The notes beneath the pieces were generated by a model, which did no database searches, was not told the origin of the DNA, and worked only from the letters and a program-made list of their open reading frames with translations. 64,000 nt of DNA from Hyphochytrium catenoides (lineage: Eukaryota; Protista; Hyphochytriomycota), in NCBI GenBank assembly GCA_900088475.1, contig FLMG01000807.1:46605-110604 (forward strand). The letters are read 5' to 3'. The first letter of the stretch is position 1, and each line of letters begins with the position of its first letter. Position numbers and translations under genes: made by a program. This document shows, piece after piece, positions 4,078 through 48,288 of this stretch.

Positions 4078-5385
4078 ACTAGTCTACGCTCAAGGCACTC
4101 TTCGCTTTGTCTGCGCTCCGTCTGCCCTGTATTCCCTGTGTTCCTTCAGTTTAAGAGCCGGTCACGATGCTCATGGAAGGAGGTAAAGTTCTATCGGGCC
4201 AGACAGGATAGACAGAAGAAGCGTCCGACGATTTCTAAGAGAATCAAAAAGCTCCTCTTATGACAATCTGCAGATTATCTTTTGAGCTCTCCAGTCAGCA
4301 CATCCAATAATCTGTCTTTTGTCTCTGTTCCTCTGGCTGTTCAAGAACGGCGCTCTTGAAGCTTGAAGCAAGCAATCAGAGGAACCAGGAGACAGAGGAA
4401 GGAGAGCGTCAAGACAGAAATAGAGAGAAAGGGAGAAGAGAAAGAGTGATATAAGTGAAAGGAAAGACAGAGGAGAGTGAAAGAGCGAAATAACCCCATA
4501 GAGGCTATATTAAAGAGAGACAGAGTGAGACGGATATGGTTATTGACGAGACAGAGAGGAAGAGAGAGAGAGAGATTGACAGAGAGATATCAGCTCTGCG
4601 GGGGTTGAGGTCTATTTTCCTCCCACGTCCGACTCCTCCTTGGGCACCAACAGTGGTGAGACTCAGAAAATAAAATCTATTCACGATATAAAAGGTTTTA
4701 GTAGAAAATTATGAACACTCCCTTATCCATACATACAGTACTTACCAATTTATATTTTATCAGTTTTTTTCCAGCAAAACCTGATTGGCCTAAACCTTCT
4801 TGGCTACCATATTATTAGAGAGAATGACAGGGGCTTTTGAGATTTCTTTCACATTTATTCCACAAAAACCTCATTTACCGCTTATGTGCGTTCCGTCCAA
4901 ACACGCCCGGTAGTTCCTAGTGTGTCTATAACTTCTATAACGGACAAATCAGCATTCTTGTGATGCCGTCACGCAAGCAAAGTGGTGATGCACTGATGGG
5001 ACCAGCAAATAAGAGAGAGAGAGTATTGATGGCAGACGCGGCTCTACGTAGATGACAACACGGAGCTCATTAGCTAAACACTCGAGTGATAAGGTGGTCA
5101 GCCTCTACGGTTGCTTATGGGACCCTTTGGGGGTGATGGTCTGTCTTGGTTTGCTGAGCGCCACATGTCACTTGCCTTCCCTACGTCGTCTCATCAAAGT
5201 TAGAAGCATGATCTGGCGCGACAATCTCTGTTATGGACCGGAGCTTGGAGGTCATGAAGCACACTACTTTATTAAACTTCTGGAAGAGATCAAGAACTAA
5301 ATGGTGAAGTAAGGTGCTCTTCGAATGATGTGTGCCGGGTCACTGGCAAAGAGCTCAAACGCACCAAATCCCGCTAGACGATTGA

Positions 5386-6720
5386 CTACTTCCGAGACTG
5401 TGGACAGAGAAGAGAGATCCATGCGTAAGCGTTCTACAGGATTCATGCTTTCGAGTTAAGGTAGTACCACACTTACCTTCTTGGGTGAAGTAGGTCGCTC
5501 ATCCTGATGGTCATTCTCTCTTTTCTTCATACTTCTATGCGCTGGTGTACCCGAAAACGGTAGCCCCAACAGCTGATTGTGGGTCTCTCTCAGTCCTCTG
5601 AAATACTTCACCGTTTTGACCTTGAGCTCCATTGTGGCGTCCTCATCGCAGACGATGGCAGCCCGCCGATGAAGTTGAAGGACAGACACCGTCCACATGT
5701 GGTTTACTCCTTCCTCAATGACCTTATAAAGCGCGTTTGCTTTGTGAATGCCGGTAATTATGATGATTACCTCACGCGCATCCATGACGGTGCCTAGTTA
5801 GAAAAGATAGACGCAGAGCGTTAGCTGCCATGATTCGCATGTTATAAGGTGCCATTTTGGGCAAAGAAGTGCACAGTTCTCCTAAGTATGTAGAGGACGG
5901 AGCGAAGTCTAATGACTGCGGAGAAAGAAGCAGTGGCGATTCATTTGAAGACACAAGGCGCTGAACATCACGGATCATAGCCGAGGCACTTACCTACTCC
6001 CACTGTGAGAGCCATTTTAGGTACTTTGGAAATATCGTTGCCAAAGAACCGGGAGTTAGCTACGATTGTATCGTACGCCAAAGTCTTAACCCTGGTCCGT
6101 GACCGCAGCGAGGAACCTGGCTCATTGAATGCAATGTGGCCATCAGGTCCAATCCCTCCCAAGAAGAGCTCAATGCCTCCAGCATCCCTAATCTTCTTCT
6201 CATAGCTGTGACATTCTGCTTCCAGGTCCTTCGCGTTACCATCTAAAATGTTGACGTTCTCTCTCTTAATATCGATGTGCTTGAAGAAATTGTTCCACAT
6301 GAAAGAGTGATAGCTTTCAGGATGGTCTTGAGGAAGATTGACATACTCATCCATGTTGAAGGTAACCACGTGTTCAAAGCTTAACTCCCCGTTCTTGTAG
6401 AACTCGATAAGCTTAGCATAGGTAGGTAAAGGTGAGCTGCCTACATTCCAAAGGAGAATAATATGTGTTTAACCTACAAGTGTACATCACCCAGCCAAGC
6501 AATTTGCAATAGTTTGGGGCTTCGGCGCACCTGTAGGTAGCCCAAGCACAAATGGGTTGTCATGACTTGGTTTATAGTCCAGAATACGCTGTTTGATGTA
6601 TTTAGCAGTCCAGTCAGCGACCTCTTCAGCATTCTTCTGGATAATCTAGGATAATACCGAGCAGAGAGGTTCATTTCTGTTTTAACTGGGCAGTGTATGC
6701 ACAGTTCTTACCAGCCTCAT
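5386..6720 (-). CDS. GNPDA: Glucosamine-6-phosphate deaminase (eukaryotic GNPDA/NagB)
   Basis: Spliced MRL|[102 protein letters not shown]. The 3' end is either a micro-exon 5397-5386 (SRK*) or a read-through stop at 5456. Confidence 0.95.
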
Positions 6721-42933: not shown

Positions 42934-45900
42934 ATGGCTCGGGCCAGCTCAGCTTTCAAGGTTCCCTCGGGCCCAGGGCAGGATGGGAGCGCTCCTGGAC
43001 CAGAGCTGGGCCCATCTCTGAGGTAAACGAAGAGCATCCTGGCAATGCTGACAAGCTGCCTTGCATTCTAACGCTCCTCCTATTGCTGCCTTCTGCTCCA
43101 TCAGGTACCTTGATGAGTTCGTCACAAAGCTTTCCTGCGCCCCTGACCTTCTTGAGATGAAGATATTCCCCGACTCAAAGGAGATTACTGAGGTCATCCG
43201 GGATGTTTCCTTTCCCAAGTCCAGGGTCCCTAGCACTAACCTCGCCGCTGCCCAGTTTAGAGTATGGCAGTCTACAACGCTGTCCGAAAGCTTGTACTTC
43301 GGTCTTCCACTGAGCTGCTGGAGGGTAACGCCCCGCCAGGCGCAGAGGGAAAGGAAGCCACCCCCTTCCGAAGAGACTCCATTATCTGCATAGGCGATGG
43401 CTCGACCCGTACGCCTCAATTCGTTTCTCTTGCTGGTCCACTCTCTTTGCTCAATGCACGCCTCTTGCGACCTGGGCCGTTGGCTCTCCTGAGCACTGTC
43501 CTGCCTGTCTTTGTTCCTATGTCTCTGCGTCGATGGAGGCCTTCACTATCGACTGTCTGCTAATTGCCTTTGGTGGTTCATCTCAAATTGGTGCTGCCAT
43601 GACTGCCCCTGTGAGAGCTCTGGTGCAAACCTTCTAAACCTTTTGCCGGTTGTCATCCACTAGCTCGATCTGCCGCACTCTTTGCATACCGTACCCGCGG
43701 CTGGGTATGTTACAGCATCGACCCCATGATGAAAATCTCTGAGGGTCCAACAAATGGGCAAGAAGAGTCTCAACAGGTTTGTTAAGAAGAAGGAAGGAGC
43801 TCCCTTGCTGGTTAGCAGTTTCCTATTAAAGTGTGTTGTCAGGCAGGCGGAGGTCCAACAACTGACAAGAGAAAAGGGATGCCCTGGGACAGAATCAGAA
43901 ACTTGAGGACAATCCGAGACAAGATTGAGAATGTAAGAGAGAGACACTCCTTTGCCACTTGGACGAGAGGTGTTCTCCCTTGTGACCGCTATATCTCCCA
44001 TCTCTCTCTCATTTTGGAGACTTTCACACCTCCCGGGGCCTAAGCCATGGACCTTCTCTCGTTCTGACCAGCTCTATATTGACTATCTATGTGGACAGGT
44101 GTCTTTGAAAGTGAACCGTGCAATCGTCGTCCTCGTGCACGCCCATGTCACGTTAGAGCAGGCTATGCAAGCTGTGGATGCTGTCGAAGTCTTGGGTGTG
44201 GTTACCTCTCCATGGTACAGTCATCTAAAATGTTCTCTTGTTCTTCCTCTATCTCTGTTCTCACTTCAACCTCTCAATGCCTCCGATTGACAAACTTGCA
44301 GCTGCAATTGGTACTCAAGACAGATGGAATGGCAGGGCCGGCCACCTGATATAGTGTATGAGGATTGCGGGATGCTTACAGAGCACAGAGAAGTAAGGTG
44401 GTGCTTCCTTTCAATAAGTGATAGATAGGTATGAGAGAGGGATGGGAGGTAAACGTCGAGAGAGAAGCAAGAGCGAAAGCCCTACACCAGCAATATCAGC
44501 TAAAAGCGATTCCTTTTCTTGCATCGTAGCTCCGCGTGTGGTCGAGCCGTCCAGTAACGCGGAGACCCGAAGAGCTGCGAGGCTGTATGGTCAAAGAGCT
44601 CCCTCCCTCGCTCCCAGGAGAGACGGGGAGTGAAGATGATGAACATCTAGGAATAGCAGACGGTGAAGCTCTTCTATCTATGGCTCTCCGGACCCAACCA
44701 CTGCAACGATCCTTGCCTCCCTCAGCTATGGAAAGCCTAATGGGGTGAGCAGAAGTTCTGTGCTTGCCTTCTCCCTCTTTTTCTCAGAATCTGCTTGAAG
44801 GCATTTCGAGAGAAGGACCTCTGCTTCAGTCCTTTTGCTAGGAGCAAATACTTCTTGCCTAGATGCAATGAAGGGGCTAGGACTACGACGAGCCTGGATC
44901 CCAAGGGTAATGGATGATGGAGACATCCAGTTTACCCCGTTAGGAGCCGCAGATGCCCTTGCTAGGCGAGAAGGGGTGTTGCCTGTGGATTATATCATAG
45001 ATTTTGCCGTGCTCGATACTCTGCTTGCCACAGCCGGAGCAAACCGACGTCCGGCCCTAGCAGTAAATTTTATGGCCGCGCTGCAAGACTGGATGACGCG
45101 AAGAGAAAGCGAGAAAGGTAGCTACATATGCCTTTAAGTAGCATATATCTCATGCCTGCTTACAGCAATGCTGCAGGTGGCGGCATCTCAGGTGCCGTGT
45201 ATTGCTTCAGCACCAAGAAGTTCCTAAGGAAACAGGCAGCGCTAGCCAAGTGAGTGAACCCACAGGAAGGATTGTGAGGCTTCAATGAGGAAGGAGAGGG
45301 AAGGGAGGTTTATTAGGAGGGGGAGTGCTGTGACCAATGAGGAAACATATAAGACATCCAAATGGAGGGCGAACGGAAACTGTGAGTCTCTTGCCGCCGG
45401 CCGGCTAGAACGAAGCTCATACGATGTGTGTTTAGTCCCGCCCTCTCTTGGCACGTCCAGACCAAGACATTCACTACTGAGACCCCGACTATCTGGCGCC
45501 TGTACTGCTGCAGGTATAACAGAGAGCTTTTTTCTTTTTTTCAAAAGGCTATAGATTGCTAGTCACTGCTCTGCAGGACAGGGTGGCGGCAGCCAGTTCT
45601 AGTACTCTGACAATCTAACTCTGTGATTCTTTCTTTCATTCACTTCAGCTCCTCATCTGGTGACGATAACAGAGAGGAGACGGACTTAACACAGATCGGT
45701 GGCAGCGGAGACTCTACCCCGGCCGTCTTGACCGAGTTGTGCCGCCAACGGGTACCACTCGGAGGCTGTGAAGAGCTGATGAGCACCCCACGGACTATCT
45801 CAAGCTTCAATGCTCTGTACTCTCAAGCAGTGAAGGACAGCGAGGACAGGACCGGATCAGCTTTGTCCACTGTCACAGGCACGATAGCAGTGAAGCGCTT

Positions 45901-46372
45901 GGCAGGTAAACATCTCCTGTTCCTGGATATGCAAGACCCAGCGGACGGGAGTCAGCTGCAGGTACTAGCTAGAAGAGAAGGGGGCCCTGGAAAAAAATAT
46001 AATTGTCGTTGCCACCTTTCCCTCTCTGCGCTGGCGATGTGACAGATAATAGCCAACAGCAGCCGCTTTTCCTCCGAAATCCTTAGAGAGAACTTTCACT
46101 TAGTGGGTAGCATCCTCCGCAAAGGTAAGAATGATGTTGCTCTATGCGGGTCCTGTACTGGGAGGCAAGAATAGACGCCTTTCCTCCTCTTTTCACTATA
46201 CAAGCATCGCTGATGGACTGATGGAGCATACGGCTTCTGCGACCCGACAGGCGATACAGTGCGGGCCACAGGCCTTCCGGATGTCTCAAAGAGAGGAAAA
46301 TTTTCGCTCAATGCCTCGGACCTTCAACTGCTTGAAAAGGCACCAACCATGTCCAGGACCGTATTTCAGTGA
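42934..46372 (+). CDS. Multidomain protein: uncharacterised SAM-methyltransferase-like domain + second (degenerate) MTase-like domain + LysRS-type anticodon-binding OB-fold
   Basis: Spliced N-part RYLDEFVTKLSCAPDLLEMKIFPDSKEITESMAVYNAVR..IICIGDGSTPRSAALFAYRTRGWVCYSIDPM..VVLVHAHV..VVTSPCCNWY..PPDIVYEDCGMLTEHRELRVW. Middle SVLLLGANTSCL..VDYIIDFAVLDTLL. C-terminal TVTGTIAVKRLAGKHLLFLDMQ..QLQVL..ILRKGDTVRATGLPDVSKRGKFSLNASDLQLL, stop 46370-46372. Some middle junctions are uncertain. Confidence 0.75.
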
Positions 46373-46446: not shown

Positions 46447-48288
46447 TCAAGGAGGTAACACGAGAGGGGTACCCATAGACTTTCGGACTTCATAAGGAGG
46501 AAGCCAATGGGTTAGGAGATTTTCGAACAGAGCCCGTACAAGGGATGGAGAGGGTCCTGTCTTCCTCTGAAGATAGCGGCATATCTCCATTGTGGGCTTC
46601 ACGCCTGTCTCATCGAAGATTTGGATTGTCCGAACAAGCCGTTCAGGGTATCGATCGGCCTTTTCCAGCCGACGAATAAATCGAAACACAAGTGAGGCAT
46701 CAGGTTGCCAGGTCACGCGAAGAGGGAGTGGACGCTTGCCTCTCCCCTTATTGTTAACCGCTATCTGTCCCTTTGTAGAGGAGAAAAGTGCCGACAACAC
46801 CTCCTCGGTTTCGTCCCATTGACCCTCACTAGTCAGGAATTCCAGCACTTCCTGCACCTGCAGGGCTGTTAGCTGCAGCTGTCTCTTCTTCATAGCAGAT
46901 ATACACTGCCAAAGCAGGCTAAGATCTTGGTTTCGTTTGGCATCTCTAAGAAGAGGGTAGAACTCCCTCGTGTCGCCTAAAGTCAACACCTTCTGGCGTT
47001 CCCACCATTCCGCGTAGTGGTTCAGCCTTCGCCGTCTATAGAACCCAATAAGATGACAGAAAGATGCGCGGTCGGGCATGAGACCCCATTGGGGTAGCTT
47101 TTGTTGAAACAGTCTCAGTGCTTTCTGCTCTGCTTGGTCGGCCAATTGTTCATTATCGTGCTCCTGGCAATAGGCCGCTAGTAGAAGGTTGAAGAGCTCA
47201 ATGTGGGGAGTTAGCGCTAGATCTCGGTACGCTGTCTCAACCAGGTGCTCTACTTTGTCTGTCCTTCCCCTCTGCAAGTAGAAGAGGCCCAAGGCCTGAA
47301 GAGTTCGTAACGTTGGCTTGAGCCCATACTTGTTTGACATTAGCTGCAAGATACTTTCTGCTCTTTCTGCTTGTCCTCTGGACAGTAGAACGCTGATCAA
47401 GGCTTCAAACACCTCAGCGTTAGGTTCGACCCCAAGCAGCGCAATGGCATCTTGCAGAGCTTTGTCTAGTTTATAGGCATTGGTCACTGAGGGCAAGGCG
47501 ATGAAGGCATTGAGCGTCTCCACATTTCTCTCAGTGTCATACTCTAAGCTAGCCTTCACCAGGTCTAGGCCTAGACTAGATCGGTTGAAAGCGCCACAAG
47601 TACGAAGAATACGATTGAGCGCTGTCGCTGATTGTAGCATCAACCCTTTCCCCACCAGCTCCGTCAGCGCCTGTGATGCCTCTTTCACTTTGGCCTTTTC
47701 TACCAGCGTCATTGCTATCTTGATGCCGATGGGCTCTGTATCCAGCCCGAAATGCTCTGACAACGAGGCGNNNNNNNNNNNNNNNNNNNNNNNNNNNNNN
47801 NNNNNNNNNNNNNNNNNNNNGTTGATGAGGAGCTCTATCACGGAGGCAAACGTTTCGGCGGACGGGCTGGTGTCACTAACCCCGCGCTCAGAAAGCAGCT
47901 TCGACAAGGACGCCCATTCAGTTAGCTGAAAAGGCCCTGGCGGGACTTGATGGCGACTTGACGCAGCTCCATCTTCTTGCTGGCTAATGGCTTGGGGAGA
48001 ACTCTTAGACGGTGCCAACGGACGGCCTTCTGCGTCTGGGCTTCCTACTTCACTATATGCTAACGGAGCTGCATCCGCGGTAGAGGAGGACGATCTGGAA
48101 AGGCAAGCGTTTGTTCCATGCCGCCTTTGCCACCGGCCTGGCGGCAGCAGTGCCAAAACCGCGCTTGCATCGGAAGGTTGTATTCTTGCTCTGCCAAGTC
48201 CTCTCCACGCTAGATGAGGATTAACTGAGGGCGACGCTCCAGGACCTAATGTATAATAAGCGAGGACTAGGCGTCTCGTGCCCTTCAT
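46447..48288 (-). CDS. Pentatricopeptide repeat (PPR) protein, probably mitochondrial; apparently intronless, spans an N-gap
   Basis: About 35-aa repeats: GVEPNAEVFEALISVLLSRGQAERAESILQLM..GLKPTLRTLQALG.., PHIELFNLLLAAYCQ, GLMPDRASFCHLIGFY, GVKPTMEI. Arg/Ser-rich N-terminus resembles a transit peptide. Confidence 0.85.
   Translation of the reverse strand: MKGTRRLVLAYYTLGPGASPSVNPHLAWRGLGRARIQPSDASAVLALLPPGRWQRRHGTNACLSRSSSSTADAAPLAYSEVGSPDAEGRPLAPSKSSPQAISQQEDGAASSRHQVPPGPFQLTEWASLSKLLSERGVSDTSPSAETFASVIELLINXXXXXXXXXXXXXXXXXASLSEHFGLDTEPIGIKIAMTLVEKAKVKEASQALTELVGKGLMLQSATALNRILRTCGAFNRSSLGLDLVKASLEYDTERNVETLNAFIALPSVTNAYKLDKALQDAIALLGVEPNAEVFEALISVLLSRGQAERAESILQLMSNKYGLKPTLRTLQALGLFYLQRGRTDKVEHLVETAYRDLALTPHIELFNLLLAAYCQEHDNEQLADQAEQKALRLFQQKLPQWGLMPDRASFCHLIGFYRRRRLNHYAEWWERQKVLTLGDTREFYPLLRDAKRNQDLSLLWQCISAMKKRQLQLTALQVQEVLEFLTSEGQWDETEEVLSALFSSTKGQIAVNNKGRGKRPLPLRVTWQPDASLVFRFIRRLEKADRYPERLVRTIQIFDETGVKPTMEICRYLQRKTGPSPSLVRALFENLLTHWLPPYEVRKSMGTPLVLPP

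Follow-up and report, generated by a model that had tools for sequence, protein, structure and literature searches.

What would a methyltransferase-like enzyme do with the anticodon-binding domain of a lysyl-tRNA synthetase (LysRS)? The question is raised by positions 42934-46372, forward strand, of a 64,000-nucleotide stretch of Hyphochytrium catenoides DNA (assembly GCA_900088475.1, contig FLMG01000807.1, C3239 in our numbering), referred to here as the window. A preliminary description had read this locus as a fusion encoding a candidate tRNA-modifying enzyme, and the analysis reported here supports that interpretation. We think it reasonably probable that the locus is one 14-exon gene for a protein of about 606 residues, in which an N-terminal methyltransferase and an inactive middle fold are followed by an oligonucleotide/oligosaccharide-binding (OB) domain of LysRS type that docks on tRNA; the folds themselves were found in homologues.

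The assembly is intron-rich (61 Mb, 4759 contigs). An exon model, read off the sequence and then refined with homologues, has 14 exons separated by introns of 59-255 nt, all GT-AG. Joined, the exons form a frame of 606 codons that runs from ATG 42934 to TGA 46370-46372 with no internal stop. By codon usage, learned from three further genes of this genome, the model frame scores best of the three in 13 of 14 exons, and the introns have no such preference. Exons 2-7 match oomycete proteins at E about 1e-5 to 7e-20. Because the open 606-codon frame, the codon scores, and the oomycete matches all point the same way, the gene model must be viewed as more than chance. The features are as follows.

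42934-43022, + strand: exon 1, predicted ATG start and variable N-terminus, ending in ..PSL plus two nt of the R codon of SLRYL; donor gtaaac
43105-43192, + strand: exon 2, conserved N-terminal helices, RYLDEF..CAPDLL..FPDSKEITE
43261-43408, + strand: exon 3, helix, strand 1, and glycine loop, ..ICIGDGST-P
43664-43776, + strand: exon 4, PR-SAALFAY helix and strand 2 with terminal acidic SIDP
43843-43932, + strand: exon 5, ..WDRIRNLRTIRDKIEN, strand 3 region; aligns with homologue ..NLVVIRNKIEN
44099-44214, + strand: exon 6, strand 4 with VHAH, helix, and strand 5 to ..VVTSP and the start of the first Cys codon
44302-44392, + strand: exon 7, CCNWY.. to ..YEDCGMLTEHRE, strand 6; aligned to homologues
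44530-44662, + strand: exon 8, final strand of the N-terminal domain (LRVW) and linker motif LRGCMVKEL; 3' end tentative, alternative 44744
44830-45117, + strand: exon 9, first part of the second methyltransferase-like domain, VLLLGANTS .. DYIIDFAVLDTLL ..
45177-45249, + strand: exon 10, ..GAVYCFSTKKFLRKQAALA, middle domain; phase-consistent GT-AG and in-frame codon score
45436-45513, + strand: exon 11, ..TFTTETPTIWRLYCC, final part of the middle domain; of all exons the least secure, with phases that fit on both sides
45649-45961, + strand: exon 12, acidic/Ser linker, helix, and first OB strands, ..VTGTIAVKRLAGKHLLFLDMQD..QLQ
46046-46124, + strand: exon 13, middle of the OB domain, IIANSSRF..LVGSILRK-G; GT-AG, phases and codon score fit; too short for a significant search
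46251-46372, + strand: exon 14, last OB strands GDTVRATG..KRGKFSL..LQLLEKA, short tail, TGA 46370-46372
46447-48288, - strand: convergent PPR-like open reading frame (ORF), single exon, 613 codons, internal N run 47771-47820; 75 nt between the two stops

The motif strings that the preliminary description had quoted for the first domain are all present, and several quoted strings arise only after splicing. The motif-I string spans the intron 43409-43663 (..ICIGDGSTP/RSAALF..), and the PCC motif is formed as SP/CC across the intron 44215-44301. YSIDP lies in exon 4, HAH (as VHAH) in exon 6, and VLLLGANTS and DYIIDFAVLDTLL in exon 9.

Homologues support several junctions of the first half. The exon 1/2 junction, SL-RYL, agrees with SLRYLNEF/SLRYLDEF in homologues. 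Exon 2 finds homologues P0011, P0032, and P0021 by tblastn (E 2.8e-12, 3.6e-8, and 2.6e-9) as well as Aphanomyces invadans (1.2e-9), and its end (..KEITE, 43192) is identical in placement to that in the oomycete loci; the next intron is 68 nt long. A 35-nt intron at 43226-43260 was rejected, as homologues back the donor at 43193. The phase-1 intron after GDGxT is common to the window and all oomycete loci. The corresponding tblastn values against P0011 and A. invadans are 6e-5 and 5e-4 for exon 3 and 1e-7 and 1.2e-13 for exon 4; for exon 6 the matches reach 6.6e-20 and 4.6e-12. The donor gtaagg stands directly after HRE at the end of exon 7, a placement found again in seven related loci. Exon 8 aligns to the start of the large oomycete exon (MKGCIRKEF) at an hhalign E-value of 8.8e-4, with the motif [KR]GC[IM][RV]KE[FL]. 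Further on, exon 10 matches A. invadans weakly and in colinear order (E 0.7), and the frame of exon 11 is not favoured by codon score, its likeness to ..VVFxCRK in the relatives being one seen by eye only. Exon-by-exon scans with Pfam and NCBIfam gave a single match, a weak one of PF01336 on the last exon (E 0.038), and exon queries against PDB sequences returned nothing meaningful.

Do these exons belong to one gene? A word search of 5.8 billion proteins with exon 6 alone retrieved a 152-residue metagenomic ORF, P0001 (E 1.4e-6, 69% identity), whose contig (L015), like four Logan contigs (L017-L020), is intron-poor genomic DNA of 57-62% GC. Pythium insidiosum, Peronosclerospora sorghi, and A. 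invadans are among the closest proteins in a profile search, and the relatives are therefore oomycetes; in the N-terminal domain, window exons and A. invadans are 55-69% identical, as would fit a related stramenopile as the probable source of the window. Seven related loci share one order of parts: an exon ending ..FPDAKE[IV]TE, an exon ending ..GDGxT at the phase-1 intron, the SIDP exon, an exon carrying VHAH..PCC..HRE, and a long final exon of 450-500 codons that starts [ILVM]RLW and runs to the stop. Order and strand are the same in the window. In every related locus GT directly follows ..HRE and AG directly precedes [ILVM]RLW; the introns so defined are 54-71 nt long and fall into all three length classes modulo 3. 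The window has the same junction, EHRE/LRVW, across an intron of 137 nt. Standalone members of the family end with a closing strand of the [IVL]R[IVL]W type, as in ..SPHNTIRIW (P0032), ..RVF (P0020), and ..RLW (P0034), and therefore the long exon must hold the last strand of the N-terminal domain together with all downstream parts. On this comparative evidence, a single gene and a single transcription unit is most likely.

The N-terminal domain belongs to a family with no Pfam or NCBIfam model. Over five distant members, the invariant columns are GDG, P-R-T-x-A, D-P, H-x-H, P-C-C, a later Asp, and a Ser, and the closing strand follows [IVL]R[IVL]W. The window keeps nearly all of these, including the glycine loop (..IGDGSTP..) and the acidic D-P (..SIDP); the only changes are PRS for PRT and Thr for the Ser. 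The fold was tested on the standalone homologue P0032, modeled by AlphaFold2 on an alignment of 26 sequences (mean pLDDT 82.5, pTM 0.81). The model has three N-terminal helices and seven strands. Against PDB, Foldseek matched it almost only to S-adenosylmethionine (SAM)-dependent enzymes of the class I methyltransferase fold (best E 2.6e-4), COMT, halide methyltransferase, MeT1, nicotianamine synthase, and RsmG among them, and the VIA-align matches are likewise methyltransferase-fold proteins. The class I fold anticipated for this domain was thus found in a homologue to whose family window exons 2-7 align. We infer that the domain is a SAM-dependent methyltransferase with the class I (Rossmann-type) fold, from a family that has no name, and take it as the putative catalytic part of the protein. 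A relation to M-Ras, raised by a search of PDB sequences with the family profile (E 0.017; VVVGDGGVGKSAL..DPT against VVVGDGxTPRTAAL..DP), was rejected as a motif coincidence, the fold searches giving methyltransferases only.

By language-model features, the clusters nearest to the N-terminal domain are unnamed and mostly phage (0.96), followed by phage Methyltransf_32 (0.91) and TRM13 (0.88). Ranked by shape, a 458-residue chlorophyte cluster (TM 0.76) comes at the top together with those phage clusters (TM 0.71-0.86). The chlorophyte cluster, from the ESM Atlas, covers the whole N-terminal domain model and may carry a different C-terminal extension. Methyltransf_32 (PF13679; METTL25/RRNAD1 type; 189 shared features) and TRM13 (PF05206), a tRNA 2'-O-methyltransferase, are the nearest annotated families and have the class I fold in common with the domain (TM 0.72 and 0.65). 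Their HMMs (hidden Markov models) found no match at E<=1 in the window exons, the oomycete ORFs, or the standalone homologues, and in genome-wide scans matched other loci only. The family has invariants of its own (GDGxxPRT, HxH, PCC), and Pfam finds no TRM13-type zinc fingers in it; hhalign of the family against the genome's own TRM13 was null. That TRM13 is a separate, canonical gene of at least three exons (contig C4338:2616-4068, L027-L029). Because neither HMM matches and a canonical TRM13 exists elsewhere in the genome, the family is distinct, and at most a distant sister of Methyltransf_32 and TRM13.

For the second domain, which begins in exon 9, a likeness to METTL13/EEF1AKMT4 had been proposed. 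At the level of fold the proposal holds, since the middle domain of a relative matches 2pxx (EEF1AKMT4), with a score that lies within 1 Z unit of many other methyltransferases. The window exon itself went unrecognized by Pfam, NCBIfam, and the atlas (atlas 1752, below 2300), and hhalign of it was null. The glycine loop is degenerate, reading GANTS in the window, with D-S-x-x-D-L in its place in oomycetes, and no intact GxGxG loop was found. Exon 9 is nevertheless an open frame of 96 codons with an in-frame codon score of 0.29 (against -0.50 and -0.36), and its position is that of the methyltransferase-fold middle domain in the oomycete model. We read the middle domain as a second methyltransferase fold whose glycine loop has decayed and which is probably inactive.

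The C-terminal domain is what would link the protein to tRNA. The LysRS-type OB pattern given in the preliminary description runs across exons 12, 13, and 14, except for its QLQV, as splicing of 45961 to 46046 yields QLQ-II. With the OB domain of the genome's own LysRS (L002) as the tblastn query, the best match in the entire window is exon 12 (E 0.003, 38% identity) and the third-best is exon 14 (E 0.5), the two exons lying in the right order. The KR, LFFLD/LLFLD, and LQ positions are aligned identically in the window and the genome's LysRS. Against PF01336, exon 14 scores 14.4 bits (E 0.038; model positions 47-75 of 75), and the C-terminus encoded on L015 scores 11.9 bits (E 0.23), both below the gathering threshold of 27. 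Aligned by hhalign to the oomycete C-terminal profile, exons 12 and 14 fall in the expected columns (E 0.049 and 0.019), and the same profile aligns to the genome's LysRS OB domain over 77 columns at E 6.5e-4. A PDB profile search gave three LysRS entries at E about 0.9, aligned at their OB domain. In a Foldseek search with the C-terminal domain of a homologue, the first 45 matches are all LysRS, and LysRS alone also aligns the helix before the barrel; in that homologue the domain is an OB barrel with the N-terminal helix typical of LysRS. Direct searches reach less far. Exon 12 had no match among 1.84 billion protein representatives, and HMMs of the oomycete C-terminal half miss the window exons (best, the last exon, E 4.9). 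The C-terminal half, to judge from these comparisons, evolves fast.

Class IIb synthetases read the central U35 of the anticodon, as in tRNA-Lys, -Asn, and -Asp. An Arg, a Phe, and a Gln, which we take to be the U35-contacting residues of these synthetases, are identical in the window exon and the genome's own LysRS; in the oomycetes, Arg and Phe are invariant and Gln is replaced by Asp in two sequences. U35 has been described as a common determinant of the class IIb synthetases (PMC9976931). A LysRS places its OB domain N-terminally, ahead of a class II catalytic domain, whereas the OB domain here is C-terminal and no class II catalytic core was found after it. The frame ends after 40 codons of the last exon, where the TGA ends the OB domain, with the convergent gene 75 nt on, so that the protein indeed lacks a synthetase catalytic domain, as had been stated. 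A recent duplication of LysRS was rejected, as exons 4, 6, and 12 have no paralogue in the window's own genome. The genome's LysRS (contig C1358) carries its OB domain in a single exon; this, with the lack of a paralogue of exon 12, marks the OB domain of the fusion as an old acquisition. The genome also encodes, on contig C1747 (L003), an intronless AsnRS of 741 residues whose N-terminal part looks GST-like by eye.

As a working mechanism, we propose that the OB domain would dock on the anticodon loop of a tRNA and would so present another part of the same molecule to the N-terminal domain, which would methylate it. The middle domain would be the spacer or scaffold of the protein, in the manner of active/inactive pairs such as Trm61/Trm6. 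In pairs of that type, a class I fold that is intact works with a degenerate one on a shared substrate, much as suggested here, and TRM6-TRM61 (5erg) and TrmI are among the structural matches. The present protein differs from them in having both folds in one chain together with a synthetase-derived anticodon binder, and the functional analogy is one we infer.

Other readings compete with a single tRNA-directed enzyme. In P. sorghi (GCA_026184515.1, L022:5001-7517), the NCBI gene calls place two genes here, one of 243 residues and the next, after 21 nt, of 472, which would make the N-terminal domain one protein and the remainder a separate one. We regard two genes as very unlikely. The split model reads past ..HRE into non-conserved sequence and drops the closing [IVL]R[IVL]W strand, which in all eight genomes opens the next exon behind a canonical GT..AG, and the constancy of order and strand across the seven related loci and the window argues the same way. 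The A. invadans model (GCA_003546525.1, L021:5001-6590), of 207 residues, passes over the exons that carry the SAM loop and SIDP. In public annotations of oomycetes the gene is therefore cut in two (P. sorghi) or wrongly spliced (A. invadans), and the fusion is not visible in current protein databases.

A protein fused as described might still act on something other than tRNA. Its substrate could be a protein of the translation apparatus, given the resemblance of the middle domain to EEF1AKMT4, or it could be rRNA, mRNA, or single-stranded DNA, the OB domain then being a general nucleic-acid- or protein-binding module. We hold this to be unlikely, although less so than a split gene: the unbroken run of LysRS among the leading Foldseek matches, the helix that LysRS alone aligns, and the retention in the window of the Arg, Phe, and Gln of the genome's own LysRS all speak for a tRNA ligand, and a middle domain that has lost its glycine loop is an unlikely catalyst. 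The N-terminal domain might also use SAM in another way, either for aminocarboxypropyl transfer, as in nicotianamine synthase and CntL, or as a non-catalytic SAM sensor. Nicotianamine synthase (3fpe) and CntL do occur among the structural matches, 3fpe/3o31 appear in a sequence-profile search at E 1.4, and invariant HxH and PCC are unusual for methyltransferases. Still, the large majority of matches are methyltransferases, and by features the annotated families that come closest are Methyltransf_32 and TRM13, which makes such a use of SAM quite improbable.

If the methyltransferase with a tRNA-docking OB domain is the correct reading, what does it say about the wider family? The folds themselves are known, and the family of the N-terminal domain is unnamed. 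A literature search found no description of the three-part architecture, and we know of no other tRNA methyltransferase that is targeted by a LysRS domain. Such a fusion offers a natural clue to what an entire enzyme family, so far unannotated, does. We suggest, tentatively and as an idea that could well prove wrong, that the GDGxxPRT/HxH/PCC proteins form an unnamed methyltransferase family of large phages, translation-gene-rich giant viruses, algae, and stramenopiles whose cellular role, anticodon-directed tRNA modification, is revealed by the weld, in the oomycete lineage, to a captured LysRS anticodon-binding domain. Should the OB domain target tRNA, the family would be a testable candidate for orphan tRNA methylation, and identification of the product could assign an enzyme to such a modification; a module of an aminoacyl-tRNA synthetase would then have been reused by a modification enzyme.

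Members of the family come from at least 20 uncultivated phage contigs, one contig of a giant-virus metagenome-assembled genome (MAG), Tupanvirus, klosneuviruses, green algae, oomycetes, and protists represented by MMETSP and EukProt transcriptomes. In IMG/VR, 20 viral loci carry a match (E 4e-31 to 2e-12; GC 30-71% in the 17 measured), one of them the giant-virus MAG contig, L051, which encodes a 311-residue version. In BFVD, proteins of Tupanvirus, Hyperionvirus, Catovirus, and Klosneuvirus match at E 8.8e-11 to 2e-7. Searches of cultured-phage genomes by tblastn with P0032 and P0033 gave no match. The standalone homologues are located as follows.

L030:7001-7591 (Logan SRR6220839 contig) and L032-L051 (IMG/VR): standalone homologues of the N-terminal domain, 165-236 residues, on contigs up to 200 kb

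P0033 lies on a T4-like contig, its gene between rIIB and RNase III. The phage neighbourhoods of the homologue contain no consistent partner gene. An RNA ligase of the PHA02142 type (PF21189 and PF09414) lies within 6 kb in three of 21 loci (L030:64-1050, L033:6861-7877, and L042:about 5240-6280), and tRNA genes lie within the same distance at three of 20. This proximity may reflect shared synteny of related AT-rich phages, and phage gene context adds little to the reading of function. A subgroup of standalone protist proteins from MMETSP, JGI, ENA, and Logan (P0020, P0022, P0023, P0025, and P0028-P0030) differs from the fused oomycete type, which has neither feature, in a long insert, acidic or of low complexity, between strands 2 and 3 and in a short Cys-containing tail, ..LPCG..C..C, after the last strand.

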